From positions 5,038,408 through 5,102,407 of the forward strand of contig CAJFCJ010000006.1 of assembly GCA_904063045.1 (NCBI GenBank): a stretch of 64,000 nucleotides of DNA, read 5' to 3'. Below, piece by piece: positions 15,764 through 61,574 of the stretch. A program made the position numbers and the translations under genes. Every line of letters begins with the position of its first letter. Within the stretch, counting starts at the first letter, position 1. Source of the DNA: Dimorphilus gyrociliatus. Its lineage: Eukaryota > Animalia > Annelida. The notes under the pieces are model-generated. The model was not told the DNA's origin. It saw nothing but the letters and a program-made list of their open reading frames with translations, and made no database searches.

Positions 15764-16059
15764 TATATGTCAATAACATTGATGTTTTATGTCAACAATC
15801 AAAAATAAAAGTATACAGCTATTTTAAATAAATCCTTTGAAATTATTCTTTCATGTTTTTAATAGTAAAAGCAAATAGATAATATAGGAAACAACATTGT
15901 TACAGAAAAGTCCATAAAAACTGGTAGTTAAAAAACAAAATAGACAATAACGAAACTAGAAAATATCAACAATTTGTTGAATATAAAATTGACAAATTAT
16001 AATCTTGAGATATTGTATTTATTCCGACAAAAGGAAATTAGTACACGTAATAAAGAAAT

Positions 16060-19000: not shown

Positions 19001-19085
19001 ATTTTACGAAATGAACGATATTATTGATTGCTCGATATGTAGCTTTAATTTGAAAGAGCACATTCGTTCCCTAAATATTCTGTGA
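16060..19085 (+). CDS. STAND (NB-ARC-like) NTPase with kinesin-light-chain-type TPR array
   Basis: P-loop-like YITGPMGIGKKT, sensor-1-like CYIIFTS, GxP-like ICDYLPITLSLAG, followed by TPRs (GDYEKAYELHRRVLHMRKPILGKNHGDVALQYNSFG; YQEALRNFSISLRIKRKLYPKGN). Confidence 0.85.
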
Positions 19086-21052: not shown

Positions 21053-21054
21053 TA

Positions 21055-21090
<36 letters not shown>

Positions 21091-21100
21091 TATATATAAA
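21053..21100. repeat. (TA)n microsatellite, imperfect
   Basis: TA run between the two CUB genes. Confidence 0.85.
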
Positions 21101-21257
21101 TATACACACTATATTATATATACAATATATGCAGTATATATATATATATGTTAAGAGGGAATTAAAGTGAATATGCTAATTTGAATATTATTGATCATTT
21201 ATCAACAGAAAATGAATTTTTGCATAGTTCAACTCATAGAGCCATTGAGATAATACA

Positions 21258-21926
21258 ATGGAGGTTTTGAGAAGTCTTCTCCAAATTTTGAGTATGTACA
21301 TCAAATATTTAATAAAACACTGTTACTATATTTAAAATTCAGGTTTTCTCATTATATGTAATTCAACAAAAATTACTTGGAGAAGAGGAACAGAAGAATG
21401 TATAAACCTATTGTCAGATAACGAAAAAGGAATTATCAAATTGAAAATTGCTGATCCAGATGCTATAAACATTTGTTGGAGGATTGTGCCAAAAGTTCTA
21501 TCGTCCAAAATATTTATCTCATTAACTGGAGGACACATTCAAAGAATTTTGCCTTATACCACTTGCTTTGAGACATTATCCATATATGGAAGTAAGAAGA
21601 GAGCCGGAGATACTTTATTAAAAACTTGGTGTGGTTATGAGAAAAATTTTACTTTAGAATCTATCAATGAAATCTATATTTATTTTTACGGAGGTTTCCA
21701 GTTCGATAAAAATAGACTCTTATATATTACATATTATTCAACTACTGAACAGGTGGAAGATAAATCAAAAGAGCAATCGAAACAAACCGTAAAAGTAGAT
21801 GGTAATTCAATTTTTGTTGTATTTCTTTCAATTATTGGCTTTGGTATATTTCTTTTCTTATTTTTTCTGGCAATTGTCTATTTTAAAAGTAATAAGGAAG
21901 AAAAATATAAAATATATAAGAAATAG
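21258..21926 (+). CDS. Type I membrane protein with one CUB-like domain, paralog of 19738-20391
   Basis: Exon 21258-21291, 51-nt intron, then exon 21343-21926. Shares CWRI.PK and IYGS...GDTLLK.WCG; TM segment IFVVFLSIIGFGIFLFLFFLAIVYF. Confidence 0.8.
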
Positions 21927-22056
21927 ACCTAATTATTTAAAAATATCTGACTTTGTATTTTTTTCAAATAAAGATATAAGTGTAATTGTAAATTATCACA
22001 TTTCTGTTTCTGTTTGCGTGAAACATGTAAAAGATAAAAGAAGACAAAAAGAACAT

Positions 22057-25000: not shown

Positions 25001-27142
25001 AAAGCTGTTAGAGGGTATTGTCATATCGAAAGAAAAGAGTGAAGATAATGAATCATCAAATTTAATTACTGAAGAAGCTCTATTACGAAATAATAATAAT
25101 TTTATCAAATCAATGAATGAGGGTGACGAAAACATCAATAGAATTTTTATGACGAAATCACTATTAAATAATCGAGGCGATGACGTTCATGGTGCTATTT
25201 TAGCAATTGATGGTTATATTTTATACAATTATATAGGCAAAAAAAAGACATTTATAAACATTTCAATTTAGGCCTTTTATCAACTTGCTCCTTGACTATA
25301 AATACAAATCCAATGTGGGCGGTAGAATTGGGAAGAATTATTACAATTGAAAGAGTGTTAATTGTTAATAATGATAACAGTTTAAAAAATATAAATGTTA
25401 ATCTCACTCAGAGAATACCTATCCGTAATATTCAATTTTCTAAAAGATGTTTTGTGAAGAATGTTACATCTAAACAACAGGTATAGCTAACGTTACTTAA
25501 TAGAGTCTATTTATTTGTGCTATACGTATCCGATATAAAAAAATATGTATGCAAACATATATACAGTATAGATACATATACATATATATAATGCATGTGT
25601 ATATATTGTACATTGACATTTCCATGGATAAATTTATAATGAATAAATCAATTTTTGTAGATCTCGTTTGTTAATGAAACTTGCCAAAGAGAGAATGGCG
25701 AATATCCTTCGGGTAAATTTCTCGTTATCACCTCGAACAATCAAGTGCTTAAGATATGTGAAGTTACCGTCTATGAATATAATAAGCCTTCTTCCGGTTC
25801 AAAATATAACTTTGACAGAGTAGTTATTAAATTATTAATTACTATTTTATTATTTAGATTTAAATAAAACTAATAATCAGCTAAATGAATGGAAAAATAA
25901 ATGGGAGTATGAAAATTTAGCAACCAATACAGTTACATATCAATCGTCAACTCATGGAGGTTTAAAAGCTTTAAATCTGTATAGTTTGTAAATATATATA
26001 TCAATTATTATGTCATTGAGTTTGCCTCTTTCTTTTTATCATTATTTAGTTATGGTCCTAAAAATGCTATAGATGGTTTGGAGAGAACTTGCGCAAAAAC
26101 AAGCGAATTGGCAACAGTTTATAAAATATGGTGGGCAGCGGATATGAGAAGAGTACAGGAAATAGATCGTGTTGTCATTGTAGGAGAAGGTATTAAATAA
26201 CAGCTCCCAAATGCGTTTATTCCAATTCTTTTATTGAATTACACAAATAAAATAAACAATTTTCTAAAAGATGTAGGCAGCTTTAAAGAATTAACTGTAG
26301 GCGTCTCTAAAAGATTACCGAAAGATAATCAATGGAAGAAGATAAGAATGGACCGCTGTTTTCATTTTCGAAATGTTAGCGGTAGTAAATTTATAATCAA
26401 CAATTGCGAAAGACCAATTTCTGGAAGATATTTTATTATAACATCTGAAAAAACACCCTTAAAGATATGCGAATTAGCTGTTTACAGCAGATTGACAAAC
26501 TTTACTGGTTTGAATCTTTTTAAATGATGTTATTTTTTAGCAAACATCAAAAGTAATAAATTACAATACATATATTCTTATAGCAATTAGCAAGATAAAG
26601 CGAATAAATACGAATAAACAAGATTACAGAATAAAGAAAATAAATCTTCGTGATGCCTACACAGAGCAAACTAGATCCAATAGTTATAACTCTTGGCGAT
26701 ACTCTGCAAATATGGCCATTGATTTGAAATTTTATACTTGTTCTATAACCGATTTAGACACGAATGACAAAACTAAACCTTGGTGGTCTGTACAATTATT
26801 AAACAGAACAAAGATTGTTAGAATAGATGTATTTGGCAATAAAAGAATCGGTAAAGGGTTTAACAGTTTAAAATCAGGTGTAGACAATCAGAAACCGGGT
26901 ATAAATTACCCTAATAAATCATCTATAACAATCTGTTGGAGTGTTCATGCTAAAGGGTAAACAAGGAATACATTTATTTAATTTCTACAACTGTAAGAAG
27001 CTTAAATCTTCATTTATTCCCTAGATTTAGAGCAATAAAGAAGAACTGTTATCAAGAAATAACTGGTAATTGGTTAATAATTGTCGAAATGAAAGCAAAT
27101 ATATTAATTCTTTGCGAAATAAAAGCCTACACTAGGATATAA
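22057..27142 (+). CDS. Large secreted protein with six F-type lectin (FTP/fucolectin-like) domains and low-complexity linkers
   Basis: Six recurrences of hhDG-(x)-C..(P)WW.V/ID..L.ICEh.hY, e.g. ENLATNTVTYQSSTHGG|YGPKNAIDGLERTCAKT..WWAADM..LKICELAVY. Most junctions are GT-AG and in frame; one or two donor positions are uncertain, and a split into two genes is not excluded. Confidence 0.75.
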
Positions 27143-27692
27143 AACTTTTAATATTGTAACATATGTTTACCATTCCTTTTATTGTGGTTTTACCTTATTT
27201 GCCGCTTATTAAGTTATTTAAATAATACAATTTCCTATTTATCCATATACTGTTTTGATATATAGTTAATTGAAGACACCTTTCTAAGTTCTCTTTCTCT
27301 TTTTCTTTTATTTTATAGTTCCGGTTGGAATTTGACCTATATTAATACCAAATGAGCATCCTTTATGCTCTACACTACGTACTATACCGTAGAGTCTATA
27401 GTTTATCTAAATAATATAATCTACCAGCTACCACCGAAGCGTATAAGGGCACGTTCGGCAGATGTAACGATGTAGGGGGGGGAGTCTAGCTTATTTTTCT
27501 TCCACTTTTCGTTCTTTGTTCGGAGTAATAGAAAAACAACGCAATCAAATGAATATTCATAAAGCTTTGAAATTAACAAGTAGTTTTTGTTTTCAAAAAC
27601 CATTACGTAATAATCCAAGCAATTCATATTTTAAATAAATTGAATAAAGATAAGAAAAAAATTCCAGTTTAGTTGCAACTTAATAGATAAAA

Positions 27693-28846
27693 ATGAAATA
27701 TTCAAATATTTCAAATACTATCTTATTACTATTTATAATGTTTATTCAATCTTTTACAAACGAAATTACGGGATCAATCTGCTATGAAGATAGCCATTGC
27801 GGATCAAATTTTCTTTGTGATAGAAATGGCACGAAGAGCGACGAAATGTGCGATTTGGGAATATGTCTATGCCCTTTAGGTTATTATGAGAATGACTTTC
27901 AATGTCAGCCATGTGAGCAGTTCTAGAACGTTATTATTCCCATCTCCTAAAGATTACATTTCAAAATTTTTAGATAAAACTCTTAATCAATTTTGCGGAG
28001 AGGGGAGAAGATGCAATCCAAAACATAACCTTCATTGTCGAAACTTTACCTGCCTATGCAAAGATGATAGATATAAGGAGGATGGTAAAAGGTGCATCCT
28101 TAAGAATCCAATTCAGTTAGGGGGAAATTGTACATCAACATATGCTACGTGCAGTAATGGAGGTGCAGAATGCGAATCGGATATATGTAAATGTAAAAGA
28201 CATTACGTTCAACCCAAAAATGAGACCATTTGTCGCCATGGTTAATTATTCAATTTTTTAATTTTTGGTTCTTCAAATTGATAAATGATCTTATAAAGAA
28301 TAATAATTTAAAGCTAGAATAGACGAATATTGTAGAAGAACGATGCAATGCGAAGGTCCTCTAATATGTAATGAAAATAATACATGTTCGTGCAAGCCAG
28401 GAGAAACTTATTCAACAGAGATATTCCCTTTAGGCGTTACTAAATCCTTTTGTAAGAAGAGTAAGTTCTCCCAAAAAATAGCTCCCATAGTACAATTATG
28501 TAAGATTTCAATCACTCTGCTTTCATTTATACTGTATATATGTAATGAATGCGGAAATTTTATATAGATATCTACATTTCTTACAGAGACCATTTACGAA
28601 ACTATAGCAAAAGGAGAAAACTCTTTCTGTGGTTCTGTAGATTATAGAAGAACAGATGGAATACTTATCGTAAAAATATCCTGTCCAAAGAATTTTATAT
28701 GTACAGGTTGTCTTAACTTGAAAGGTAAAAGGGAATTTATCTGCAAAAGAAGAACAAAAAGCATTGTATCGAATAGAGTTGGGGGCATATTTATTGATTA
28801 TAAATTATTTATAGTCATCTTAATTTACAATCAATATATAAAATGA
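27693..28846 (+). CDS. Cys-rich EB-like surface protein, outlier family member (CRP0)
   Basis: Same four-exon, all-phase-1 layout as the 42-61 kb array: signal peptide, 7-Cys module, two 6-Cys modules joined by NPIQLGGNC, one 6-Cys module, TIAKGENSFCG 5-Cys module, and a weakly hydrophobic tail. Confidence 0.85.
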
Positions 28847-29399
28847 ATATAAAAGATTTTGTAGTGTTGTTGATAGAGAATTGTTGTAGTATAGAATATA
28901 AAGAATAATAAGATAAACTACCTATGTTTTTTATTATAAACTCGATAAAAATCTCTTGTATAAAGGTTGTATGCGTTAAATGACCAAAAGGGAATCGTTT
29001 CCAAATAGTATTTTCAGGCTATTGTCAAAAATAGCTCTGTTTAGAAAAGGTAAATTTGTTTTCGATAGACGAATATAGATTAAACACTGATAATTTATGT
29101 ATAAGCATGAACGGTTGAAAGTCAAAATTCCCCATAATTCCTTCTTTATCGTTATACTATTGAAAAAGAGAGATAAGTATCTTCAAGAGAATAAAATTCT
29201 TTTTATTAAAGATATTTCAAATGAAAACAGTTACGATAATGACAAAACATGACCTAATAAATTTTTTTTCACCGGAAGTGATAAGTGTTTTCTTTTTAAT
29301 ATTAAATTATTTCTTTTTTTATGTATTGAATAGATATTTTTTCTTTGTTTTTAAAATGAATAAACATTAAAACATAACAAAGAAAGGAAATGTGACTAT

Positions 29400-42463: not shown

Positions 42464-43453
42464 ATGAATAAAATGATTGCTTTAGCTATTATTGGAATGG
42501 CTCTTGTGGCATCGTCTTTTGCCGCTTTAGAATATAAGAGTGGTGATATTTGTGCTTTGAATAGCCAGTGCCCAACAGGTTTTATTTGTAATAGAAAGAG
42601 AGATCACTATAATTGTGAATTAGGAAAATGTGCGTGTCCTGATCATTACTATCAGGATTCTGATACTTGTAAGAAAAGTAAGTCTTTCAATTATACATTC
42701 GTTCCATTTTATATTTATCCCTTTTTAAATCTCAGAGTCAACTGAAGGACAGTCTTGTACTGTTAGTTCCACTTGCGACACTGATTTGATGTGTATCAGC
42801 AGTAAATGTACCAAGCTGGTTGAAAAAAAATTAGGAGCAACTTGTGATCTATCCAAAGATATATGCCTATATTCTTCTTGTATCAGTAGCAAATGCGACT
42901 GTATAACTGGTTACTTCAAGGATGGGGAAAAATGTAGATTAAGTAAGGAGAAATAGAGCTAGAAAAACTTTAAAACAACTTTTATATCTTTTTTTATTTA
43001 TTTAGAGAAACACAAAGAAAGTTGTAAGAGTGATAATACGGAAAACTGTGAAGCTAATCTCCAATGCAAAAGCAGCGTTTGTGAATGTCCAGATGATTAC
43101 GTTTGGAGAAAGGTCAAGAATGAAGATGGAGAAGATAAGGATATGTGTGAACACAAAGACGGTAATAATTTGAAAAAATATTTATAAAAGTTGATTATTT
43201 TTTACATAAAAATTTGTCTATGTTAGTTGAGAGAGTTATGACTTCTGCGAAAGAAGGTCAAAGTTGTGGAACAAAATCGTACGGTGGCTCAAGAAGCAAT
43301 CAAATTTTCCTTAGCTATTGTGTAGAAGATTTAAAATGCAACAGATGTTACGGAGTTGATGGAGATTACAATGTTTGCAGAGGAACAGCCGCATCAATTC
43401 TCGGAAGTATTTTCCTATTAGTGTCTTCTGTAGTTATAGGAAAATTATTTTAA
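42464..43453 (+). CDS. Cys-rich EB-like GPI-type surface protein CRP1
   Basis: Four exons, phase-1 introns; signal peptide MNKMIALAIIGMALVASSFA; C-terminus RGTAASILGSIFLLVSSVVIGKLF. Confidence 0.9.
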
Positions 43454-44564
43454 GGTATAAAATCTAATATAAACTTCAGAAGAAGAAAATATTTATGGAA
43501 CTGTTGATAAAACATCAACAGTTCATTCTTCCCTGTAATGACTAAATCAATTGATTTTAAGTTTTGTACATATACATATATGTTTATGTTTATGTTTATG
43601 TACTTCTTAATGTATCTAACAAATTAATAATTACATCTATAATAAAATTCAATCATAAATAAAACAAAAAATGAGCTAAATACATGCCAAATGTTCATGT
43701 TAAATAATCGTATCTATGACGAAACTTATGATGTATGTATTGAAATATATGTGCAGAAGTTGTTTGAGATTTTCAACATGAATGTTCTGTCTTGTATTCA
43801 TCCAATAAAAAAGCTTTTGTCATTCATAAATAATTTGCTTACTTTTAAAAAATTAAACTTGGAATAATTTAATAATAATTAACAATAGAGTATTTTTAAA
43901 TAGTGAAAATATAGGTTTAAGCACTCTAAGTTAGAGTCAATATAAAAAGGAATAAATATGTTATTGGATACGTGAGGTAACCATGGAGAAGAAGTCGTAA
44001 TGACTGAATTGTTTGAAGTATTTGTACAATGATAGTAAATTAATAAAAATTTTTGATGACAAGGAAGAATTAAAACAAATTTATGGCTCTATGATAAATA
44101 GTTGCAATTCTCCAAATCCCTTTCTTTCTAATATATTAAGTTTTTTTTGTAGGTCAATGGGGACAGGTAAAAAAAAGTGTAAACTGTTTCTAACTTTCCC
44201 AAAGGAGATATCAACCTCTGATAAATATTAGACAATATAAAATAACCATAATCATTCACAATGAATGACTTTCTTTTTACGACATTTACTTTCCTTTTAC
44301 AAGTTCTAATTGGGCTATACGCGAAAACTTAATTGGTAATTTTATACAAAGCGAGGGAGTGGCTTTAATAAATTTACTAAATAATTATTATACCTTTTGT
44401 ATTCGTAGAAATTATACCTTCAACAATGAACTTTAAATCTAGGCCTAATGAAAATTTCTCCTTTATGCTAATTAATCAGCTTATTTAGCAAATTAGTAAC
44501 ATATATAAAGGGAAAATTTATGACATTCGAAAATATTTCCAAGTATAGTTCATTTTAAAAAGAT

Positions 44565-45642
44565 ATGAACAGAATCATTTTTAAAGGATTCTTTACATGT
44601 ATCATATCCAGTCACATTGTGCAATCCGAGTATGACAAAAAATTAGGAGACGTTTGCACTAAAGATTGGCACTGCCCTGCTAGTGCCTTTTGTGATAAAT
44701 CTTATTCAGGTGGCAATTTGGCTTGTGAAATTGGAAGATGCAAATGTAAAAAGGATTTCTATCCTCAAAATTCCGAATGTAGAGCAAGTAAGAAGATAAT
44801 TTTAAATCAATCTCTATTAATAAATTCTATGTATGCTTTCTATTTAGCAAAACCTTTTGGTTCCACCTGTACTTACTCCAATGAGTGTAGTGCAAACATT
44901 CAATACGGAAGATGTTTAAATAGAAGATGCTCCTGTATCAATAACAAATTTTATGTAGAAAGGAATGGCGTTTGCGAAATTAGAAATCCTAAAAACTATG
45001 GACAAGAATGTCTTATTTCTTCGGATTTGTGTTTGGGAAATAACGTTTGGTGTAAGCTTGGAAAGTGTGCTTGTAGGACAGGCTATTCTCGTATTGAAAA
45101 TGTTTGTAGATTAAGTAAGCACACATCTAATCCTGTAATCTCCGATTAAGTAAACGTGTAAAAAAGTTGTGTAATATATACAAATTTAACAGAAAAATAT
45201 CAGGAATCATGTTCAACTAATGACATTCGTTGTGAATCGAATCTTCAGTGCAAGGCTAGTGTGTGCATCTGTCGTAATGGCTATCAATGGTCTAAATATA
45301 AAAATGCTCATGGTAAAGATTTTCAAGGCTGTATATTGTCTACCAGTAAGCACGTTCAGCATAAAATATTATATTAACCAGTTTTATAAGTATTCTGATC
45401 TTTCAGCGGAATTTGTGTTAAATGAAGTTCAGAATAATGAAGCCTGTGGTGAATATACTTTTAATAGAAATGGGAAATATATAACATTTCTGTCGTATTG
45501 CGCAAGAGATCTTAGCTGTGTACAGTGTTACTCAGCAGGTTTAAACTCAAATTATAAAGTCTGTAGGGGAAGCTCTAGCTACTTTTACCCCAATTGTTTT
45601 AATCTAATTGTTTTCTTATTAATTTTTTTTCTCCTATGTTAA
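44565..45642 (+). CDS. Cys-rich EB-like GPI-type surface protein CRP2
   Basis: Four exons; NPKNYGQEC linker; tail RGSSSYFYPNCFNLIVFLLIFFLLC. Confidence 0.9.
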
Positions 45643-45923
45643 TTTCTCATTTTCTTAAAAATAAAATGATAATAATACACTTGAATTAGCAAAATCAACT
45701 ACAAAACGAAAGGATAAGTAGCCATAATTTATTGGTCATGCACCAAGTTATCTTTATTCTTCTATTTTCCTTTTACGTTGAAAAATTTTATCTAAGTTGG
45801 ATATAGTATTTTTATCAAGTTTATGCAAATAGACATTATCATGTTCCTTATAAACGCCAGTAAAAGCATTGCGATTGTTATTATGGAAGAAAGTTTTGCA
45901 AGAAGAATTGAAAAGTTTCTCGA

Positions 45924-46963
45924 ATGAGGATGACAACTTTTGAAAACAATTTCTATAAATGCCTTCTGGTTTTTGGTATTCTGTTTTGCTATGTTAATGC
46001 AGATGCAGATTGCTATAATGACAATCACTGTGGTACAAACTATTGCTGTGACAAGACTAGTAGAAACAACGAATTGAAATGCGATTACGGATCATGTAAA
46101 TGTAAACCTGGTTATTTTAGAATAAATGATACATATTGCAAAGAATGTGAGTTCTTTAATCATATACTTTCTGCTATATATCTTGGTTTTTTTTTTAAAT
46201 AGCTATAGGGCATGGAAAAGACTGTGATAATAATAATCAGTGCAATCTTGAAAAATACCTCACTTGTATAAATTCAAAATGTCAATGTCCAGATAAGTAT
46301 AAATTAGAGGGAGACAGATGTGTTTTAGAAATGCCAGTAAAGTTAGGACAATCTTGTACAGATAGTAAGGCACAATGCGAAGGAAATACAGAATGTAACA
46401 ATGGTAAATGTGAATGCTGGTCTTGGTTGATTGAAAAGGAAGGAAAATGTGTCAAAGGTAAACAGAAATATTTAATTAGCTCTCATATTTGTTTTAATTA
46501 GCTAAGTTTCTCAGGTGAGTTAGACGACAACTGCGACAGGGATTCACAATGTGAAGGAGGTTTAAGATGCAAAATTTCAAAATGTGGATGTGATGACCAA
46601 GAAACCCCTTTCCGTAAATTTGAAGCGCATTATAATCAACACACTTACATATGTTTAGATAAAGACGAATCTGGTAATAATTTTTAATTATTTTTTTTTT
46701 GATAACTTAAACGTTAACGTACACTTCTTACAGCTGAATCGGACGATAGAACAGCTAAAGGAGAAAACTATAATTGTGGTACTTTTAAAGCAGAACCTAG
46801 CCCGAATCATTACGTGTACTTTGCAACTAAATGTCCAGGTGATTTAAAGTGCACTGACTGCCGAGACGCTATATCCTCATCATATGTCTGCAGAGGTGGA
46901 GCTAAGTCTCTAATGAGTAGCGTCGTTTTAATAATCACAGTTATATTTATGATTTTAATATAA
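45924..46963 (+). CDS. Cys-rich EB-like GPI-type surface protein CRP3
   Basis: Four exons; TAKGENYNCG; tail RGGAKSLMSSVVLIITVIFMILI. Confidence 0.9.
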
Positions 46964-48068
46964 ACAAAATAAAAATGCCAATGATTAACAAAAAATCTCT
47001 GCAAGGAACTAAATAAATAAATCAATAAAGAACGAAATAATAAATTTTCATGATAAGAGAAAACGCCTTTATACATTAATATTTTATAACATTGAACATG
47101 TTACGTAATTACAAACAGATTAATCATTTCAATTCATTCAAAGTATTTTATTAACAAGATTATAATTATGATAATTAATTTGAGCTAAGAAGGAAGTAAA
47201 TTTTATAGACTTGAACAATTTCCGAGATATATCGCTATCAGAAAAGAGAAATTCCCTTTTATCTTCCTCTTTTTTTTTCACAGTATTTTATATTTGAGAA
47301 GTGATTTCATGCTTTAAAATCTTTACTGTAAAACAATTAAACAATCAATCATTCAATATCTATTTGAACAAAACTTAAGCTCTTCTTTTAATCTCTTATG
47401 ACTATCAGTTGCTCACATAATATATTCTCAAAAGATACTCTTTGATTCATCTTTCCTTCTTTCAATCAAAACAATCAATATAAAATAATTTTAACCAATA
47501 ATAGTAGTGCCATCTATAATTCGATTTAAAGTCTTTTCTTTTTTAATTTTTCTTTCTTTTTACCTAAAGTGGAATTGTGAACAAAATAACTCGAAAATAT
47601 AAACAATTTAACCAAAGTAATAATATAAAAGAAAGCTTGATATGATGACAAATCTGATAAAAAAATGACACAAAACCGAATCAAAAGTTTAATTTGATGG
47701 CAAATAATGGTAAATATATACAGTATTTTACGTTGTTCTTAATCTTGTTTTATCTTCATATTATATCTTATATAAGCTCTTTATTGTCATATATAGATTT
47801 TGTTGAAATATTAATATTTTCTTAGGTTTAAGTTAACTTTTAACTAGTTTTCAATTAAAAGTTACAATATAAAAACTATATTAAATTTTATAGTTTAACT
47901 TGAATTAATTATCAAAGTTCTTAAAGAAAATAAATGCAATAGATAAGAATGCTATGGAATATTATTGTATTTTTATATTTTAAGAAATTTTTAAAGGGCT
48001 CAAGTAAGGAATGTGGAACCACTTTACGCATCTCATTTGGTTCTAAATCTGTAAGAAGAAAGAATATA

Positions 48069-49147
48069 ATGGGACTGTTGAAACACTTATCTTTTATTTT
48101 TCTTTACACTGTCATATTAATAGAGTTTGCCGCTAGTAAACTATGCGAAGAAAATAATGATTGTTCTTTTGGATATTGTAACAAAGTGAGTAGAGGGTCA
48201 ATAAAATACACATGCAATTTGGGCATTTGCCAGTGTCCCAAGAAGCAATTTCAAGAAAATGGAAAATGTCTGCCGCGTAAATATGAATTATTTTAATTAA
48301 TATAGAATATAGTTATATTGTTTTATATATACGTATATATATATATTTATATAGAAAAATCTGAAAATGAAGAATGTAATAAATCTAAAGAATGTTTAGG
48401 AGATTTGAAGTGTTTGTCCAAAAAATGTACATGCTTGGGATTTAAATTATCTCCAACTTCTCAATGTCAAGAAAGGAATAAGAAAACTTTAGGTCAATTA
48501 TGTGAACGTGATGGGATGCCTTGCAGAAATAGAAATTCGTTATGCTCCAATGGGACGTGTATTTGCCAAAAGGGAAATATACTGGAAAATGGTCATTGCA
48601 GACATGGTTAGTATCTTTCTTAAATAAAATAAACCGCAATGCAATCAGTTTTTTCTTTCGTTTCATTTTTTTTATTCATAAAAGCTCTGTATATGGAACG
48701 GTGTCAGTCTCCAGATATTACCTGCACATCACCATTAATGTGTATAGGTGGGCTGTGTAAGTGTAAGAAGGGAAATTATTACAACTATACTGTGCCAAGT
48801 GGCAAATTAGTTATGAGATGCGATAAGAGCAACAGTAAGATTATATTTTTAAAGTCTTTTTTGTCAATATTAGTATATTAATTAAAAAATAAACTTTAGT
48901 TGCCCTATTTGAAAAGGAGGTTGAACCTTATGAAAGATGCTACTGGACTCTAGAAAAGAAACTTCCTGGACAAAAGTTAATGATGTTAAATCAATGTCCC
49001 GAAGGATTCACGTGTAAAAAGTGTCCAAAACAGAAAGAGATTTGTTTGAATGTAACATCTATCATCTTGTCAGATGGAATCAATCAACTCTCGTATAATT
49101 TTTTATCAACTTTCCTGATTATAGTAATAACTGTATTATCTTTATAA
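48069..49147 (+). CDS. Cys-rich EB-like GPI-type surface protein CRP4
   Basis: Four exons; tail SDGINQLSYNFLSTFLIIVITVLSL. Confidence 0.9.
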
Positions 49148-49585
49148 ACAAAATACTCTTATTAATGAAAAATCTTGAATGCTTATGTTATGTAAGACTA
49201 AACCTGTAGAAATCTTTTACATCTGTACATCTGCTATTATTTACATCAAGTATACTTTTGAAAAATGTGGTGTCTCTACTTGCATATAGTTCTTGGATAG
49301 GATAACTTCGTTTGTTATCTTTTAGCATTATATAAATAAAATGACAAGGTAAACCATTGGTCAATATTTCAATGTTTTTACGTTACCTTAATGTTTGGAG
49401 TAGAAAGCAGATAAACATAAGATAGTAATCTACAAAAAGTATCTATGTATCAATTTATAACTAAGCTATCTTTTCTCTATGCTACTCACTTCTATAAGAA
49501 TGAACCCTATGATACAATATGGAAAAAAAAACAAATTATCTTAAACTTAGTTATCTATTCATTTCCCTTTTAATCTCGCCTAAAA

Positions 49586-49602
49586 GAGAGAGAGAGAGAG
49601 AG
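49586..49602. repeat. (AG)n microsatellite
   Basis: AG run in the CRP4-CRP5 intergenic region. Confidence 0.85.
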
Positions 49603-49739
49603 AAAAAAAACTTCAATCGTCGTCGCATTCGTCTAATTAACAACCATACTGACCTGAATAGTATAATAGAGAATAAAAAATATTGCCACTTATTATTGTA
49701 GGAGAATCCTTTATTATCCTTCCAAATGAAAAAGAGAGA

Positions 49740-50015
49740 ATTTTATACGACTAAGGATAAAAACCTTTTTTCGCATTTTCCATTTACTGACGTTAAGTAC
49801 TCAACAAAATTACAAGTTCCATCCGTATTACTTTTGGTAAAAAAAAATCGTTACAAACGGCATCATTTGCAGTACATTTACTGTCCAATCGCTCTAGATT
49901 CCTAAGGATAAACTTTTCATTAACTGTTTTTGTATTTATTCTTGTCGCATTGACATTTAGAATCGATATATTTTAAATTAGAGGGCAGAAAAAAAAAGTA
50001 CAACGTTCTCTTATC
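49740..50015 (-). pseudogene. Decayed CRP-family copy
   Basis: Frameshifted and stop-interrupted fragments ERCTFFFC/PSNLKYIDSKCQCDKNKYK**../RAIGQ/KCTANDAVCND/TDGTC..VNGKCE match exon-2 modules of the neighbours (e.g. SNLKCMSFRCECENDFYK). Confidence 0.5.
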
Positions 50016-51029
50016 AATTATTCTATGTTTCGTAACTCATTTTTTTGTAGCTGCAACTAAATAGTCTTACTATTTTATTCTCTGTAAAAAAAAAATGCCA
50101 CGAAAGTTGGTATGATTTATTTGAGGCTACTGTGTAAGCGTTTTAAAAGATTAATCCTTGTATGTTATTTATAATTGTGTATACTTTGAAAAAGATGGAT
50201 TACTAGGAAAGTAACATTTTAGAGAAGGTAAATCTATTGTAAGAACTGAAAAATTCTGCGTATTGTAAAAATTATAAAAAGTACCTCTAGTGAGTGGATT
50301 AAGGGAAATTTATGTCGAAAGTAGAGCAGTTTCATTTAAGTTATTCTATTATGTGACAAACAACAGACGCTTTTGTAGGCCTACCATCAACACAATGAAT
50401 AAACATAACATTAAATAACGACGTAGTGTAAAGCAATGATAGTAGAAAAAGACTTAGTATCACACAAGCCATTTTAGAACAAGAGCAATTGTTATAAATC
50501 TCTTAAATGCGTGTAGATGTGTTCTTTTAATAGAGAATTACAACTGTCTATCCAAAGTATTTGCCAACGGGAAATTTGTATAGATGTAAAAGACTTCTGC
50601 TCGTATAAAAATGAGTGAGATAGACCTAAAGACATGAAATATTCATTGTATTTTTAAAGCTGAAGGGACCTAATAAATAGAATATTTACGAGAGTCAAAG
50701 AATTAGTACGCTTAATAAGATCTTAGTACAATATCACAAGTACGAAGTATATTGACAAAACTCTGGTATATTCCTTATTAGTCATACCATCTCGTTTATA
50801 TAATTACAAGAGATAAAAATAAACTATTGTGAAAATATATACAAATATTATTAATTAAGAGTATTTAGGGCCTGAGCTTGTTAATTAATTAATAATCTAT
50901 ATATATATATATATATTTATACTAGTATTTTTAATAACCAACTGCTAAAAACAACACATTTGTTTGAATAATATAGGAATAACTAACTTTTCGCTAATAT
51001 TTATTGAAGAATGTAAACATTTCTTTAGT

Positions 51030-52106
51030 TTAATATATTAATAATAATAATAAACAATTATAAATAATTACAATAAGTGGAAATAGCGAATTGTAGTTAC
51101 TTTCTCCAGAATTTTCGTGTTGTATACAATGATAATGATAATCGAGATTAACGTCATTGCATTGAGCGCATGTAGAATGTTTAGGACATTTATTTATTAG
51201 TACGCTATCCTCAATATTCGACAATCCACAAGATTCATTTATACGAGCATAACTCCAATAAATGGTAGCTTTGTTGTTATTTAAAAAGTTCTTAATTGGA
51301 AATTTAATTATAATCATATAATTATACTTACGAAGTTTTGTTCTACAATAAACAATAGTCTTTCCTTCTGGTGAATTTAATTTCATATAGAGCTTGTTGT
51401 CTACACAATTGCATTTTCCTTGAATACATTTAAAGGGTTGAACGCAATGAATCGAATCTGTACACTCTTCTTGATGATTTACTGGTATTTTTTTAAAATA
51501 TTATATAATTGTTATCAAATACATTTCTAATTTATAACTTACATAATCTACATTTATTATCTTTTCTTATATAATTCAATCGACATTTGCATTTATTATC
51601 AATGCATGTTGTTTCATCGTCAATACAACTTGAATTCATTTCTTGGCAATTTTCTCCATACTTTTTAGGATTTAGGAGAACGCAACTCGTTCCATTCCAA
51701 GAGTATTTATCGATTCTGCATAAACACTTTGAACGTGTAATTGCATTGGAAGAACAATATAAGTTTAATTCAGTTAAACAATTGTCATCAGTAACACAAG
51801 GGTCATTAAATGTTTTCTCTGTAAGATGTTTTTGTTTAACGTTCATATTGACATCATAAAAATAATCTTAATTATCTACTTACGAGGGAAACATTTCGAA
51901 TCTGTATCATATTTCTTAAAATATCCTTTTGGACATTCGCATTTACCATAATCACATTTCACCCTCTCATCACTTGAGTTTTTATTGCAGTATCCAGTCT
52001 GACAATCGCTATTTTTTGTACATACTTGGCCACCGTACAGTGCTTCAGAATGAAATATTTGTATATAGAGCATTAGAGATACATATTTAAACTTTTTAAT
52101 TTTCAT
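51030..52106 (-). CDS. Cys-rich EB-like GPI-type surface protein CRP5
   Basis: Four exons; NPKKYGENC; tail NSGESNYNSLFPLIVIIYNCLLLLLIY. Confidence 0.9.
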
Positions 52107-52391
52107 TTTAAGCTCTTGATTCTCTCAATCTTTTTGGTTGAATGGAAATGTCACAATGTAAATAGACATAATATGATAATTAACCTAATGAAAACGATTT
52201 ATAAAGTACGCATGCGTACCAAGTAAAACAGACGTTTTTGAATAGTGTTCATACGTTTCCTTTTTCATAAATGAGTTTCACTTGAATGAATAATAAATTA
52301 TGATAACTTGTAATAAATTGTAGAGTGGAAGAAAAGAAAAGAAAAGGTGTATGTCAGTTAAACATACTAATATATGTAATTTTATTTACAT

Positions 52392-52422
<31 letters not shown>

Positions 52423-52619
52423 TTATTATACTACATATATACAGTATATATCATATTTATTGAATATACTAAACTGATCTACAGAGACATTTGTTTAACT
52501 AACTAATTGTTTAATTTTTTAGTTAACTACTGTATATATCTTAATAGGCCGAAAATATTGTACTGTTACTAGTTTATTTGACAATTCTGATCATATTGCA
52601 ACAAATATAAAAAAAACGA

Positions 52620-53749
52620 ATGAGGATTTTTCGTTTAACAATAACAATTTTGTTTGTATATTATATAAAGCTTGAATCTATTAACGGTTATCTGTTTGAA
52701 TGTACAGACAATGAAGCTTGTTCATCTGGAGTTTGTTATAAACATTCTACTAATATTTTAGGTAAATGTAATTATGCTACCTGTTGCCGTTTGGGTTTCC
52801 TCATTGATTTTGATACAGAAAGTGCTAAATGTACCCGCTGTAAGTTTAAGTAAAAAAGCCCTTATATTGTGTCTATATGAACCATATACTAATATTTAGT
52901 AAGAACCATAAATCAAGTTTGTGGAATTGGTATTCATTGTGATCAAAGAAAAAATTTAGGTTGTGTATACGAAAATAGTGACAGAGGTAAATGTAATTGT
53001 CCGGAAAATTATAAATGGAATGGTGAAAAATGCTCTCATAGAAATCCAAAGAAATTTGGTGAAAATTGTAAAGATAGTGATGCTAGATGTATTGATTATG
53101 GTAATATATGTAAGAATGGGAAATGTCAATGCGAATCCGGTTTAAAAGCAGATGGGAATATTTGTAGACATTGTATGTAGATTTATGATTATCTTACTAT
53201 ATTCAATTTTAGTATAGAGATTTTTTATATCTTTAAGTACGAAATGGAGAGAAATGCGGAAAAGATGGATTTTGTATGGATTTTCTTTCTTGTATAAAAG
53301 GTAGATGCCAATGTAGTGGAAATAAGAAATACTTTTCAATACGATCTCCAACAGAAGGAAAGAAATATTATTGCGAAAAGAATATTCGTTAGTATTCTTG
53401 TGTATAAAAAAATATATTACAGACAATCTAATTAAGGATTATATGTTAATCTCTATCAGCAAAGATTAATTTGGAAAAAGTGGGATCAAAGAAAGTTTGT
53501 GGAGTTTTCAAAAATTCAACAACGATAAACGTAAAAGAATGTGAAAAAGATTTAATTTGTTCTCAATGTATCTCGTTGAAAGGTAAAAAAGAGTGGATAT
53601 GTATAGAATCTGCCGACTCCAGTCATTTGGTTAGTGGTTCTGGATCAAACTCGAATAATTATTGCAGTATCTATTCTACATATTTGATTGTAGGAATAGC
53701 CCTTATCTCTGTCTTTTTTCATACTATTCATAGTAAGAAATGCTATTAG
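52620..53749 (+). CDS. Cys-rich EB-like surface protein CRP6
   Basis: Four exons; NPKKFGENC; Ser/Gly spacer followed by YLIVGIALISVFF and a short HSKKCY tail (GPI or TM). Confidence 0.9.
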
Positions 53750-54039
53750 CAAGATCATCTGAAAATATATTTACAGTATTGATAAATTAATAAAGTTATA
53801 TTTGGAATTGTGAAGATTCTTTGCTAATAGTGAATTTTTTCATGAATATTCAAAATAAACAAATATGTAAATGTACTTTGAAGGGTAATTAAAAGGGATT
53901 ACGAGAGTTTATTAACTAATTACTATTTTTGTGTTAGTATCGTCTACTCTTCACTTCTACAAAACAAAAAATGTTAGATAGGAAAATTATGTAAAAAGCT
54001 AGTCTTTTAATATTCTTCGTTCGATATCCAAAACTTAGC

Positions 54040-55028
54040 TTAAGCTTTCCTACAAACAAAACTATGTTTCAATCTTGGATTTAAACATCGAACGCACTGT
54101 AAATCTTTAGGACAAGCTGTAAGAAATAGACGGATACCATTTCCGTACACATTGAATCTATGAGAGTGGCCGCAGGAATAATTTTCACCTCTGGCAGTTA
54201 CTTTATAAACTATTTCTGTATGTTTAAAAGAATGAAAATCATTAATTATTAAATTTTATCTATTTGAATTTACATAATTAGTAATTAATTGTCTTACCGA
54301 GTCTTGCACATCTTGTGATTTTACTACCGTCTGGTAATTCATTTTCAAAAAAAATTTCTCCTTTTGGGCATTGACATGTTTCATTGATACATTTAACAGA
54401 CGATTCACAATCGACTGTATTCGAACATCCAGCTTCATTATTTCGAACTTTATAGAAGATATTCAATTTAGATAACTTTAAATATAGGAACTTTTTTTTA
54501 ACTTACGACGTCTACAGACCCCATCTTTTCTGGTATATCCAGAGCTACATTTACATAGACTATCCAGACAATTTGTGTTCTCTTCTACGCATTGAGCATA
54601 TGGAGAATTACAATTTTCTTCGTATTTTTTGGGGTTTTTAAGCACACATTTGTTATGTTCAAATTTATAAAAGTCATTTTCACATTCGCATCTAAATGAC
54701 ATACATTTTAAATTACTCATGCACGTATCGAGTCCAAAGCATTGTTCACCTTTACCTCTTTCTGTTAAATGAAAAATAATAGAATATACAAATATTACTA
54801 TAAATTATTTAATATACTTGGTTTACAGTTTTCACTTTCCAAATACTGATCATCAGGACATCCGCAATATCCGTTTTCACAGTATATATCTTCAATATTT
54901 GATTTTTTTATGCATAAACCGGAAGTACAATCTTCATTTGTAAAACAGAGTGAATTTGAATTTGCTAAACACACACATGTATAAAAAATTAGATAGCTTG
55001 GAAAGGAAACTATGACATATATATTCAT
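54040..55028 (-). CDS. Cys-rich EB-like protein CRP7, lacking the C-terminal anchor
   Basis: Four exons; NPKKYEENC; TARGENYSCG; frame ends VCRKA* at 54040-54042. Confidence 0.85.
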
Positions 55029-55313
55029 AGTTTACTTTTTGAAACGTTGTATTTAGAATAAGTTACGAGAATGAGGGAACACATTCAACATTCAACAGGA
55101 TATTGACTAAACAAAAGATAAGAAAGTGTACTTATCGCGTTTTGTATTTAGTATTTAAACATAAAAGGCATACCATTCATGTATAAACGTACTTTTATCT
55201 TCTTGCTCTTTGATGAATAACAATGAGTAAAAGTCACAAAGAAATAATAAAATAGTATAACATGTACATTTTATCAAATTTTTATTTGCCAAAATCTTGT
55301 CCTAATTGAAACT

Positions 55314-56381
55314 TTAATGCAGAATTAATAAGAAAACTAAAGATACTATAAGTAGAGTTTTCATACAAAAGATACGATTAGAAATTGATGGTTTGTTTGA
55401 AAAATTTTTAGATTTTGAGCAAAAATTTCCGATTAAATTATCAGCCGTAAGACACGCAGAGCATAAGTAACCCTTCGGACAATGTGTTACCATTAGAGAT
55501 CCCTTTGACATTTCGCTTTTTTCGTATCTATAACCGCATTCCAGGTCCTTTTTGGTTACTTTTTCTCTTATAGTAACTAAGTTTTTTAAGTATTATTCAT
55601 TAGTTAATTAATATTTATATCTATTGTTTTACTTACAATCCTTTCTTTCACAAGTTTTTAATTTTTCTCCATTAGGCAAATCATATTCAATATATTGATG
55701 GTCTGCTAAACATTGACACTTCCCATCTCTACATTCGAGTGGAGTATAACAAGGTTCTTCACTCGAACATTCGTCGTTATGTCCCACTATATGTTTGCAA
55801 GGGTTATTATTATTAATATTTCGTTTCTAAATTAATTATATTTACGTGGTTTGCATACTCCATCCTTTCTACTATACATTGGCGAACAAACACATTTGTC
55901 GGATATGCACGAATTATTTTCCTCTTCACAAAATCCAAAATTGTCTTTACAATTTTCTCCATATTTTTTTGGATTTTTCAAAATGCACTTGCCTCTATTT
56001 AATTCATAAAATTCATTTGGGCAATCGCATTGTTGAAGAACGCATTGGAGACCATTTGATTTTAAACATTGGGTATCATGGGTACACGATTCACCTGCTT
56101 GTTTCTCTGTTTTTTTTTTCAGAATGAAAGAGCTTAATGCTATTTAAATAAAAGTATAAGGAAAAAAAAACATACTGGGTTGACATCTAAAATTGTCATC
56201 AAAGTATTGTTCGCCGGAACAATCGCATCTTCCATAATAGCAGGTCTCTTCTCCAAAAACAGATTTCCTATTACAAAAGCCGGGTGTACAATGTATATCG
56301 TCGGAACAGAGATCGAAGCTTTTACTCAACAGAAACAACTGAAAGCCGATAGAAAAAATGAAAGAGAGTTTAAGCTGCATG
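55314..56381 (-). CDS. Cys-rich EB-like GPI-type surface protein CRP8
   Basis: Four exons; ATG at 56381; NPKKYGENC; tail RIFCMKTLLIVSLVFLLILH. Confidence 0.9.
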
Positions 56382-56786
56382 TTTAACACTATTTTATTTC
56401 CAAATGATAAAAATATATAAATAGGCTTACGGTCACAGCTATCGATAATGTATTAGTCAGTATCGGTGATTAAAAACTTCAAAATTCCCCTTAAACTTTC
56501 TTTATTAAATAGTGAGGAGGCTATTCCCATTTGTTAAATAACAATTGCAATATTTTGTTACCTCTTCTAATATCTATATATATATATATATAGGAAATTG
56601 GACAAAAAGGTAGTTCAATTTTATATTTTCTATTATCAGATAACATAGTTAAATGATCTGTTTGCGGAAACTTCATTATAGTTAGAGATATTAAGATAAA
56701 TATTTACAGTACTTGAATTTGAATAAAGACCGGAGAAGACAAAGAACACTGTTTCGATAATGTAAAATATTGTATGTTGAAATTTT

Positions 56787-57847
56787 TTAAAATCTGACTG
56801 CTAATGAACAAACAGCTGATAAAAATATATAAACAACACTAAAAACTAGAATATTTGCTTCACTTGATGAACTTTCTTTGGAAACGCATATATTCCTTCT
56901 TGAAGAGCTTATGGCTACACAATTTAAACAGTCAGAGTCTTTTGGGCAATTCTGTTTGAATAGATAAGTGTCACTTCCTTCCTGTGATGTAAAAACATGG
57001 CCGCAACCGTGTCCTTCTTCAACGTCGAGGTTTTTTACAATCACTGTTGCATGAATATCATTTGAAATTGAGATATATTGTTAATCTATTATAAGAATTA
57101 ATCTTACTATTTTTATCACTGCACATAACATGTTGGGTGCCATCTGGTAAGGTTTCGTTGTAATATTTCCTATTATTCGTACAAATACATCTTCCTTGAG
57201 AACACTCAAAAAATACCCCACATTCATATGATTCTTTGCATTCCTCATTGTAGTTGACTAATCATCAAAATATTAATTATAAATTAACAAGCAGAAAGGA
57301 TTTACTTACGAGCTCTGCATTCATTTCTTATTCTAGGTACTCGATATAAACATCGGCATTTTCCCTGCTCACAAAATTGATTTTTTTCATAGCACATATC
57401 AGTAGGTGAATTACAACTTTCTCCGTATTTTTTAGGACTTATCAAGACACACTTTCTATTTTCATATTTATACTTATTGTTCTGACATCTGCACTTTCCA
57501 TGAAAGCACCGTAAACCTTGTTGGATCGAACAATGCATTTGATGAGAACACAGCTCATCGTAGCTTTTTTCTGTTTTAAACAAATAAAAACTTTTTCAAA
57601 TAGATACTTACTTATTTAAATACTCAAACTTACGTTTTTCACAAGTATTTCCTGAAAGATAGGTTCCATTTGGGCAATTGCAAGTGCCGATTGCGCATAG
57701 TTTTGCCCTATTATTTAGAGCAGATTTATCACAATAGCCTGTTTCGCAATCACTATTCTCAAAGCAGATAAATGAACTAGCCATTTTTAATTTTATCGTA
57801 AAAATTAAAACACATATTTGAATGAAAAATACGATTGAAGCTTTCAT
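56787..57847 (-). CDS. Cys-rich EB-like GPI-type surface protein CRP9
   Basis: Four exons; SPKKYGESC; tail SSSSEANILVFSVVYIFLSAVCSLAVRF. Confidence 0.9.
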
Positions 57848-58285
57848 TATTGTGTCTAAGTGAATAAATGAGAATTTTTTTAGACTGGTATGGAAGTCTA
57901 GCTTTTCTCATATTTAGTATCATATTGTTTAACTACGATATCAGCCAATCGATAAGTCATAAAGTTAGAGCTTGATGAAGGCTTATGAATAGCAAAATAT
58001 ATCCTGTTTTACTATATGTCATCTTTTAACAAATTTGCAAATTTTGCAGTATTTTTCCTAATCGTGTATTGCGTACAAAACAATTTTAATAGAAAGTCTC
58101 ATTGGAAAAAAGTAACGAAATGTATTTATCATAGCTTAAAAATACATACACGTTTATACTAATATTAAATATTACCTTATTAAAACAATCAATTGTTCAA
58201 CTGTAAAATATCTAATGTGACACTTCTCATATACTTTTTTTAACTAAAGCAAGTTAATATTAAAAGAAATATTGTACTTTACAAA

Positions 58286-59315
58286 TTAGGTAGCTTTCTT
58301 TCTACAAACACTTTTCACAGAATCGTCGGCATCCGTACATGAGGCACAAGTCATATGATCCGGACAAGAGATGACCCATATTTTGATCTTCTTCTCCATA
58401 CTGCCAGCCCATGCTGTACCACAAGAATGATTTTCTCCTTTTGCTGTACTCTTAATTATTTCAGCTAAAATTTGACCATGCATTATTATATATACATATA
58501 ATAATTTCATTTTCATTTCATGTGATAACTTACCGTCTTTAGAGCAGACATTCCACGTTTCACCATTGGGTTTAGTTACTTTAAAGAGTTTTTTATCTTG
58601 TCGACATTCACATTTTTTATTAATGCATGAAAAAGGTGGCGGACATTTTTCTTTGGTTGAACATGCTTCTTTATATTGACCTATTAAATAAGTAAACTTT
58701 CTAATAGTAATGTAGTTATTTTACATCTTGAATTACTTACGACGTCTGCATATATTACCATCTCTTACTAAAGGTGGAATGCACGTGCATGTGTCATATT
58801 TACAATATGAACTCTCTACGATACAGAGTCCCTCTACTTTATTGTTAAATCTACATTTTTCTCCAAGTTTCACAGGTTTTTTTGGTACGCATTTCCTATT
58901 TTCTACTTTATAAAGATCATGTCGACATTTGCAAATGTTCTGTATGCAATTAAGATTATCCTCCTCAGAACATTCATTGAAGCCATGACAAGCATCTCCG
59001 TGTTGACGCTCTTTAAAATTTAAATATAATCTATTTCATTAAACTTATATATACAGTATATATATATATATATATATAAGATTGTATATATTGTTAATAT
59101 TATTAATTGATAGACTTACTTGGGAAACACTTGTTATATCTCATATATTGTCCCTTTGGACAACCACACTTGCCGTATTGGCACACTATCTCTGATTTTA
59201 ACAATTTAACGTCACAATACCCAGTTGAACAATGCTCATCCTTGTAGCAAAACAGATAGCTTTCAACAAATCCAGCTAGAAGAATTAAACTTGTAAAAGT
59301 ATTATAAACTTTCAT
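58286..59315 (-). CDS. Cys-rich EB-like protein CRP10, lacking the C-terminal anchor
   Basis: Four exons; ATG at 59315; TAKGENHSCG; ends VCRKKAT*. Confidence 0.88.
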
Positions 59316-59891
59316 CTTCAACTATAGAATTAATAATGTGGTTCTTTGTTCATTTCCACACTGATCTATAGGTCTAAATATTATTGACGTTGATAAGCTT
59401 ATATGATATATAAATGTATATAGTCTCTCTTTAAGTAAACTTATATTTAATCTAAAGTGTAGATAAGATTTCAGGTATATCCTTAAATTTGTAATAGGGG
59501 AGATAATAGTAAATTAACAAAAATGTCTGCTATTAAGAGAGAACTTTCATAAAAGTATTATTTTATAGATAAGAAAGTACCTCCAGAGTAGAAAAGTAGA
59601 AAAAATGCACATTTAAACTGGTCTAGAAGCGAGAACTTTTCAAGTTTTGAATGATAAAAGGCGAGAAATGATTAAGTATTATTCAAAGTGGAGAAAAAAT
59701 ATTATTAAACAATGAAGTATTAGTCAAATGACTATTTATTCAGTTAATAACAACTTAATTCTCAGTTTAGTGTAATTTAATGACACATAACATAGACTAA
59801 ATGTTTAATGAGATAAGATATCGTATAAATGAATTAATGAATACAAGTTAGTTTGTTGAACTAATACAGTAGAAAAAAATATAGTATAACA

Positions 59892-61574
59892 ATGTTAAAT
59901 GGGATTTTTATTTCATTTTTATTGATTACAGTATATCAAATAAACAGAGTTTCTTCCAGAACGATATGCTTAAGAAATGAGCATTGCTCTTCTGGTATTT
60001 GCAACTTTAAATCGAAATTCAATTTAGGCATTTGTAATATTGGATTTTGCGATTGTAAAGAAGGATATTATCCCATTATTGGCCATTTGACAACCGATTG
60101 TAAGAGATGTAAGTATTTAGTGATATAATATTGATATAACCATTGATAGCCACCGTCATCAATTTAAATTTAGTAAGACTTTATAACGAATCTTGTGAAA
60201 ATGACGAACTTTGTTCGGATAGTAAAAGACTAGCTTGCCAAGCCACGAAACCAAGGAAATGCCTGTGTAATAGGAAAGATAAATGGAATGGTCAAGAATG
60301 CGTACCGAGAAATCCAAGAAAACTAGGAGAAAAATGCTCCGATCTTCGAGATGTTTGTATTGCTAAAAAATCTTATTGTAAAAATGGAATTTGTTCTTGT
60401 CAAAATTACTTTAGACATGAGGGAGATAGCTGTCGACCAGGTTAGTTATATATATAACTCTTTATTTTGTACATTGTACGAAAAAAATTGTGGCCACACT
60501 AAAAATTTGTGTGTAATTGGTTTTTGCCTGATTGCATTAAAATTTCATGACAATTTTACATTGCTATTATTAATGATGAATGTATGAAAATTGCAAAAAA
60601 TGGACTTATATATATATATATATATAGGGGAAGAAAGAAAAAGCGTGTTATTAGGAGGGAGATTGTAGGTACTGCCCTTAATTAGCAGATTTTGGCTAAA
60701 TGAACACTGCTTCTGCCTAGCATCAATCAAAGGATTAGAAATATCCTACAGTATCAAGAACTATTAAAAAAGCCAAAACTTAATTCAAGACAAATAGAGA
60801 TAAGAAAGAAGTTCTGCTACACGTATCATGCCCTTGAATCACGGCATAGATTCATTTTTACCAATGAAAAAAAGTCCAATCTAGACAGGCCTGATTACTA
60901 GACTTCCTTTTAGCAAAGCCTTTCTTAGAAAAGAGAATTTTTTTCCAAGTGGGACTTATTGGGAGTTGTTAGGGCCGGGTTTACTATATTCATCATTACT
61001 AAAAGTGATATACTGTATAATTGTTAACAGGTTTAAAAATTTTCAGTGTGGTTACTTTAGATATACAATGTAATAAACAGTTAATTTTTAGTTAGGATGG
61101 GAGATACCTGTTTCACAAATAAATCTTGCCAGTATCCATCTTTGTGTGTTAACAATAAATGTAAATGTCCAAATGGAACGGAAGTGTTTAAAGATAAGAT
61201 AATTGGTGAAGACTGGACAGAATTTTGTAAAAGGAGGAAAGGTATAATAAACTTTCTCTTCTTATTCTTTTAATTAAACCTTTCCAGTTTAAAATATTTT
61301 ACTTTTAGTTAGAATTACCTATCAGAATAGGCAATTGAATGAAACTTGTGGTTATTTATTGGCTGAAAATGAAATAACTATAGAAAGATGTCAAAAAAAT
61401 TCGATTTGTGATTATTGTTATGGAGCTCGAAACGAAGAAAAATCAATTTGCATACGACCTTGGAATTCTAACCATTCAAAGACAACAATTCTACCGGCCC
61501 ATCAGAATTCTAGGGCTCCACTGCTTAATAGCTATTTTACAATAACTATTCTCAGTTTCGTGTTCTTTTTATAA
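59892..61574 (+). CDS. Cys-rich EB-like GPI-type surface protein CRP11 (enlarged intron 2)
   Basis: Four exons; NPRKLGEKC; intron 2 is about 650 nt; tail NSRAPLLNSYFTITILSFVFFL. Confidence 0.88.
60627..61017 (+). mobile_element. Tc1 transposase relic inside CRP11 intron 2
   Basis: 60731-60901 reads LLKKPKLNSRQIEIRKKFC..FIFTNEKKSNLDRPD*, matching Tc1 KKP.L....R..F/VIFSDEKKFNLDGPD. Ends in ..ACTG-TA and begins in a TA run. Confidence 0.75.

Follow-up and report, generated by a model that had tools for sequence, protein, structure and literature searches.

A cluster of twelve cysteine-rich EB/EGF-like genes in Dimorphilus gyrociliatus that may encode a specialised surface coat

Proteins built from EB modules (PF01683) are extracellular, consist of tandem six-cysteine repeats scoring above the EB cut-off, and are common in invertebrates, where their function is not known; according to a recent study on nematodes, EB, WR1, Lustrin and EGF form a single continuum (10.1101/2024.07.08.602367). 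Proteins that might work in a comparable way are the P25/P28 proteins of Plasmodium (Pfs25, Pfs28, Pvs25), which comprise a signal peptide, four domains of the EGF-like type and a glycosylphosphatidylinositol (GPI) tail and form compact triangular surface proteins (PMC9664031). Here we describe a family of twelve genes (g0 to g11) found in a window of 64,000 nucleotides (nt) of the annelid Dimorphilus gyrociliatus (contig CAJFCJ010000006.1, positions 5,038,408 to 5,102,407; all positions below are those of this window). Its products share with EB-module proteins the tandem six-cysteine repeats and differ from them by (i) a first module with seven cysteines, (ii) an end module with five cysteines that we encountered in no other family, (iii) the arrangement of the genes as a 12-gene cluster, and (iv) the lack of Kunitz or LDLa partners. 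With moderate confidence, we favour the reading that they are specialised, non-enzymatic proteins of a surface coat or of a ligand-binding panel. The GPI-anchored, four-EGF-like tile of P25/P28 is then the nearest functional analogue, but not a homolog: neither Pfam nor the Protein Data Bank (PDB) yielded a match to the P25/P28 EGF domains, and those proteins lack a fifth module, contain 20-22 Cys and form a two-gene family of parasites. Among Atlas clusters, those closest in their features (0.89 and 0.86), which serve as leads only, are arthropod EB proteins of 255-286 amino acids (aa) resembling 'prion-like-(Q/N-rich) domain-bearing protein 25' (pqn-25-like).

A six-frame scan for Cys-rich segments combined with a splice-aware search recovered the array largely as an earlier note on this DNA had drawn it, that is, eleven intact four-exon genes at 42464-61574 with open frames, phase-1 introns and the order ++++-+----+. 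The search added a twelfth paralog, g0, which the note had missed and which is located outside those coordinates at 27693-28846 (+), 13.6 kb upstream of the array. Each of g1 to g11 contains three GT-AG introns, all in phase 1, and its open frame extends over 263-310 aa; the region is poor in GC (22-33%) and the introns are short, measuring 52-109 nt across these eleven genes with the exception of intron 2 of g11. Introns 1 and 2 are placed two codons and one base past the last Cys in every gene, a uniformity that is beyond chance. EGF-like modules are classically flanked by phase-1 introns (class 1-1 exons). Because the modules of the array are EGF-like, the uniform intron phase, which the earlier note had pointed out, is thus expected and no special feature. 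An intron-free contig (L005, run SRR30211050) encodes a 75%-identical ortholog of g1 with its three junctions exactly as in the g1 model, which confirms that the transcript of this ortholog is spliced at all three predicted sites. The paralogs share 20-34% identity (10-26% if Cys are disregarded) so that their description as 'barely alignable' is somewhat overstated, each exon being alignable across all twelve genes. When the profiles of the four exons were run against the window, neither further exon remnants nor pseudogenes emerged; recent conversion tracts between paralogs were likewise not found, the longest coding repeats spanning 44-71 nt at no more than 80% identity. The window holds no repeats of the rearrangement type, just TA microsatellites and short paralog similarities, and has no match in Rfam.

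The four exons encode 7, 12, 6 and 5 core Cys, respectively, which add up to 30. This scaffold is fixed except for g1, whose exon 2 has 10 Cys since module 2 is devoid of its last Cys pair, and g3, which has one extra Cys in exon 1 (8 core Cys). Of the 23 full models, 22 thus have an even total, which amounts to 28 for g1 and its ortholog and to 30 for the others, whereas g3 has 31. The assignment of EB-type modules is borne out by Pfam, with its gathering cut-off of 24.3 bits for PF01683: exon 2 exceeded the cut-off in 10/10 pieces scanned (25.5-49.7 bits), as did three full-length proteins (39-43 bits), and EB is also the main Pfam match of the exon 1 pieces. Together with the repeat unit C-x5-C-x5/7-C-x4-C-x-C-x10-C, which has the spacing of EGF-like domains, these scores identify modules 1-4 as EB/EGF-like at the level of sequence. 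A scorpion-toxin-like spacing in module 1, encountered in a search of PDB sequences (E-value 0.11), was dismissed as chance. Since an N-terminal hydrophobic stretch is present in all models (by hydropathy only), the tandem repeats reside in predicted signal-peptide proteins, in support of the surface or secreted design proposed for the family.

Module 5, with the pattern C-G-x13/19-C-x5-C-x2-C-x6/11-C, stands apart. Comparison with Pfam yielded no family and only scattered chance matches, PDB sequences gave nothing significant, and profile comparison detected no similarity to the EB modules, so that module 5 cannot be recognised as a degenerate EB module. An AlphaFold model calculated from a 23-sequence alignment is all-beta, with a small five-stranded sheet and a predicted local distance difference test score (pLDDT) of 90. 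In structure it is closest to knottins and to the second subdomain of Dickkopf, draxin, colipase and IGFBP, with no Z-score above 3.7. This model would place module 5 loosely in the small-disulfide, knottin-like class, which carries no indication of function.

Proteins of the family come in two forms. In ten of the twelve genes the C-terminus contains a hydrophobic stretch (hydropathy over 15 residues 1.7-3.0), preceded by a polar spacer and followed by 0-6 residues; the tail had been described as usual, and it is absent from g7 and g10, which stop 3-5 residues past the last Cys. GPI signals had been called established, which goes too far: they can be read only from the terminal hydrophobic stretch with its 0-6 following residues. 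The ten tailed members are probably GPI-anchored at the cell surface, and g7 and g10 are probably secreted. The tail-less state is shared by h7, h2 and h4, the counterparts of g7 and g10 in a related species (see below). In g6, a KKxx-like motif follows the hydrophobic stretch (53735-53749, +); the ortholog is without the motif, which is probably due to chance.

The related species, hereafter species 2, is represented by a 17.8-kb contig (L001 and L014, run SRR23372229) with 27% GC and short introns, on which we identified ten intact four-exon, phase-1, 30-Cys genes (h genes) and one decayed copy; the contig ends before the positions of g1-g3 orthologs. Gene order, orientation and tree establish the orthologies g4=h10, g5=h9, g6=h8, g7=h7, g8=h6, g9=h5+h3 and g10=h4+h2 (inverted), with tree support of 95-100 for four ortholog pairs and 86-89 for the remaining three groups, while g11=h1 was assigned by best match. 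Including g0, whose ortholog (contig L006) adjoins the 3' end of PINCH just as in D. gyrociliatus, syntenic orthologs exist for eight array positions plus g0, and the relation is 1:1 for g4-g8, g11 and g0. In the tree the genes are interleaved by species, with 9 label changes and no clustering by species. In species 2, only the g9 and g10 lineages show turnover, with two extra copies and one pseudogene. The latter, a copy from the tail-less h4/g10 lineage (L014 ~2340-3220, +, equivalent to L001 ~8180-7300, -), exhibits stops and frameshifts in several exons. The fast protein divergence that had been noted among the paralogs extends to the orthologs, which are 34-50% identical at a synonymous divergence (dS) of 1.1-2.1 that is saturated and thus rough. 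Outside the Cys, orthologs share ∼30-38% and non-orthologs 20-25% identity in every exon, which indicates that the character of each paralog has been retained over its entire length. Whole-gene ratios of nonsynonymous to synonymous divergence (dN/dS) are 0.21 for g1 and its L005 ortholog and roughly 0.3-0.5 for the dS-saturated pairs, which indicates that purifying selection dominates at the level of whole genes. Near 1:1 retention in a related species suggests that the family is old and stable rather than rapidly turning over, and comparison of the sequences thus portrays an old, fast-evolving, yet stable family and not a variant system with rapid turnover. Birth-and-death evolution, as the earlier note had it, plays a minor role: its hallmarks, i.e., species-specific clades, many pseudogenes and lost orthology, were not found in this two-species comparison.

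The favoured reading, a specialised surface coat or ligand-binding panel, can then be outlined as follows. Each gene product carries a predicted signal peptide, four EB/EGF-like modules and a knottin-like end module, as shown by Pfam, the alignments and the AlphaFold model. Ten members would be tethered by a GPI-type tail to an epithelial surface, while the two lineages ending at the last module would be secreted. With the 30-Cys scaffold fixed, the loops drifting fast and paralog identities kept across species, a set of specialised surface proteins would result, which might cover the surfaces of epidermis, gut or glands as a ligand-binding coat with a protective or adhesive role. When the profiles of modules 1 and 4 are aligned, the third Cys of module 1 falls in an insertion (probability 89%), which makes it a spare Cys; since module 5 has five Cys, one must be spare there also, and both are kept in 23/23 full models. 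These two Cys might serve either to form a ring or to connect chains. Most likely, they would pair within the chain, by which the protein would be closed as a compact ring. It is tempting to speculate further that a disulfide between modules 1 and 5 closes or chains the EB proteins and that these constitute an annelid surface system, its ten anchored and two secreted paralogs co-assembling as a cross-linked coat or as a layer that binds ligands combinatorially, a proposal that we hold to be unlikely in this full form. Three observations weigh against the coat or panel as outlined: (i) a full-length, single-sequence AlphaFold model of g10 has a pLDDT of 39, which is too low to show ring closure; (ii) transcript evidence covers one of the twelve genes and comes from a related strain or species; and (iii) the two species share 97% identity in a 39-residue PINCH exon, compared with 34-50% for the array orthologs, whose low identity could stem from recurrent positive selection for a role in recognition.

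The last point leads to the rival that fares best, namely that the cluster serves immune, self/non-self or gamete recognition as a diversifying repertoire shaped by birth-and-death evolution and positive selection. The difference from the PINCH exon, which is the sole neighbouring control, speaks in its favour, as do the duplicated and inverted g9 and g10 lineages of species 2 with their one pseudogene, the resemblance of anchored and secreted forms to receptor/decoy pairs, and the fact that the D. gyrociliatus genome has few expanded families, most of which are local, immune-related duplicates (PMC7854359). However, most positions are 1:1 with order and orientation kept despite saturated dS, the window is free of pseudogenes, and a signalling tail is found on none of the members. 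The zero coding differences among five samples of species 2 point in the same direction, albeit weakly, since a single culture may have supplied all samples and rare variants are lost from contigs. Taken together, we grant this explanation a minor though real chance; the cluster does not speak for a new immune or variant-surface system.

If the spare Cys of modules 1 and 5 were to join chains head to tail instead, a disulfide-linked extracellular polymer would arise, seeded by the anchored members and extended by the tail-less ones into cuticle, mucus or egg capsule. The presence of a spare Cys in each end module of all full models would fit such an arrangement, and so would the conserved occurrence of anchored alongside secreted members and the tight clustering of their genes; yet the even Cys count is more simply explained by an intramolecular bond, and we consider the polymer improbable. 

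The resemblance of module 5 to known small disulfide-rich folds calls for caution. When its model is superposed on other structures, the second subdomain of Dkk1/Dkk2, draxin, colipase and mini-IGFBP gives weak fits (Z-scores 2.1-3.0) and inhibitor cystine knot peptides give Z-scores of up to 3.7, and an Atlas comparison gave a template modelling (TM) score of 0.55 to DKK1; these scores are typical of a common small-disulfide arrangement. Module 5 differs from the folds named by its five Cys with a CxxC motif. Membership in the Dickkopf/prokineticin/colipase group, which is defined by a unit of ten Cys in two subdomains with a CC doublet, was rejected, as nothing exceeded the Pfam cut-off, only a single module resembles half of such a unit and a CC doublet at the relevant position occurs in g3 only. 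Membership among the inhibitor cystine knot toxins, i.e., short peptides with six Cys in three knotted disulfides, was rejected too, given five Cys within a protein of 263-310 aa. That the proteins modulate growth-factor or ion-channel signalling through a knottin-like end module, in the manner of Dickkopf, Argos, IGFBP or prokineticin, would be in line with the presence of Dkk1/Dkk2, draxin, Argos, IGFBP and spider knottins among the structural neighbours of the modelled module and with a weak match of one exon-1 piece to the Dickkopf C-subdomain 1 profile (E-value 0.013), but is very improbable in view of the low scores (Z at most 3.7, TM 0.55), the lack of any sequence or Pfam match for module 5, a Cys pattern devoid of both the third knottin disulfide and the colipase inter-subdomain Cys, and the usual conservation of such modulators across phyla, which the array proteins do not share.

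Database searches were conducted with single exons, natural open reading frames and public protein ids, while joined gene models served to check frames, build trees, calculate dN/dS and compare the genes with related loci. Word-based searches with the exon 1-2 reading frame of g2, DgyrCDS5504 and an alignment, which cover proteins of 0.55-1.75 times the query length and are silent on much longer or shorter relatives, yielded nothing beyond this locus and fragments from species 2. A profile of module 5 compared with 1.84 billion proteins gave six matches, i.e., five family members (DgyrCDS5502, DgyrCDS5504 and three from sequencing-run assemblies) and one weak partial match, and no protein from another locus of the D. 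gyrociliatus genome. Neither kind of search revealed a direct sequence homolog outside Dimorphilus-like samples, and the family, which had been suspected to be lineage-specific, appears so far to be restricted to Dimorphilus and close, dinophilid-like relatives. In agreement with the claim that no family with exactly this layout has been described, we found no paper on EB modules combined with module 5. As a separate observation, three repeats of P0005 (JGI/IMG, 182 aa), a lipoprotein-like, probably bacterial hypothetical protein, match the first half of module 5 (E-value 8e-5; hhalign 83%).

In the public annotation, g10 and g11 are represented by proteins identical to our models, DgyrCDS5502 and DgyrCDS5504. 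By contrast, g9, g8 and g7 are fused into one model of 624 aa (54040-57784, -), g6 is covered by 118 aa only (52774-53180), and g5 is without any model. We rejected the fused model because each of the three genes begins with a start and signal peptide of its own and terminates at its own stop, in D. gyrociliatus as well as in species 2. With three genes fused, one partial and one missing, the cluster would have been undercounted in family counts; nine expanded gene families have been reported for this genome (PMC7854359). In a laboratory annelid, the cluster offers a compact and tractable set for tests on EB-module proteins, to which the unclassified 5-Cys module and the conserved anchored/secreted split add specific tests of their role.

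The individual models, with exons given in the direction of transcription, are as follows. The upstream paralog g0 (exons 27693-27912, 27974-28240, 28314-28460, 28587-28846) encodes 297 aa including a hydrophobic tail. The array proper begins with four tailed genes on the plus strand: g1 (42464-43453; exons 42464-42677, 42736-42942, 43006-43161, 43227-43453; 267 aa), g2 (44565-45642; exons 44565-44787, 44848-45114, 45193-45345, 45407-45642; 292 aa), g3 (45930-46963; exons 45930-46146, 46203-46457, 46515-46673, 46734-46963; 286 aa) and g4 (48069-49147; exons 48069-48276, 48355-48606, 48685-48834, 48900-49147; 285 aa). They are followed by g5 on the minus strand (51030-52106; exons 52106-51884, 51818-51543, 51481-51332, 51268-51030; 295 aa, tail) and g6 on the plus strand (52620-53749; exons 52620-52839, 52900-53172, 53238-53387, 53460-53749; 310 aa, tail). 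Four genes on the minus strand come next, of which g7 (54040-55028; exons 55028-54818, 54761-54507, 54447-54298, 54215-54040) and g10 (58286-59315; exons 59315-59120, 59010-58741, 58680-58534, 58464-58286) each encode 263 aa of the predicted secreted type, while g8 (55314-56380; exons 56380-56176, 56106-55846, 55786-55637, 55576-55314; 292 aa) and g9 (56787-57847; exons 57847-57634, 57570-57310, 57257-57108, 57043-56787; 293 aa) carry tails. The array ends with g11 (59892-61574, +; exons 59892-60108, 60174-60440, 61092-61241, 61309-61574; 299 aa, tail), the second intron of which (60441-61091) extends over 651 nt compared with 68 nt in h1 and thus contains an insertion.

Between g0 and the array are located PINCH, an aminopeptidase and a tRNA methyltransferase-like gene. 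A stretch of ∼140 nt between g0 and the last PINCH exon (28989-29129) is 87% identical between the two species; it contains no open frame, no Rfam match and no convincing consensus structure, and is possibly a conserved element of a 3' untranslated region. Immune-like genes are found upstream of g0 at 13722-27150: an NTPase-TPR pair, two small single-pass proteins that appear CUB-like by eye (with no Pfam match), and lectin-like domains of the F5/8 type.

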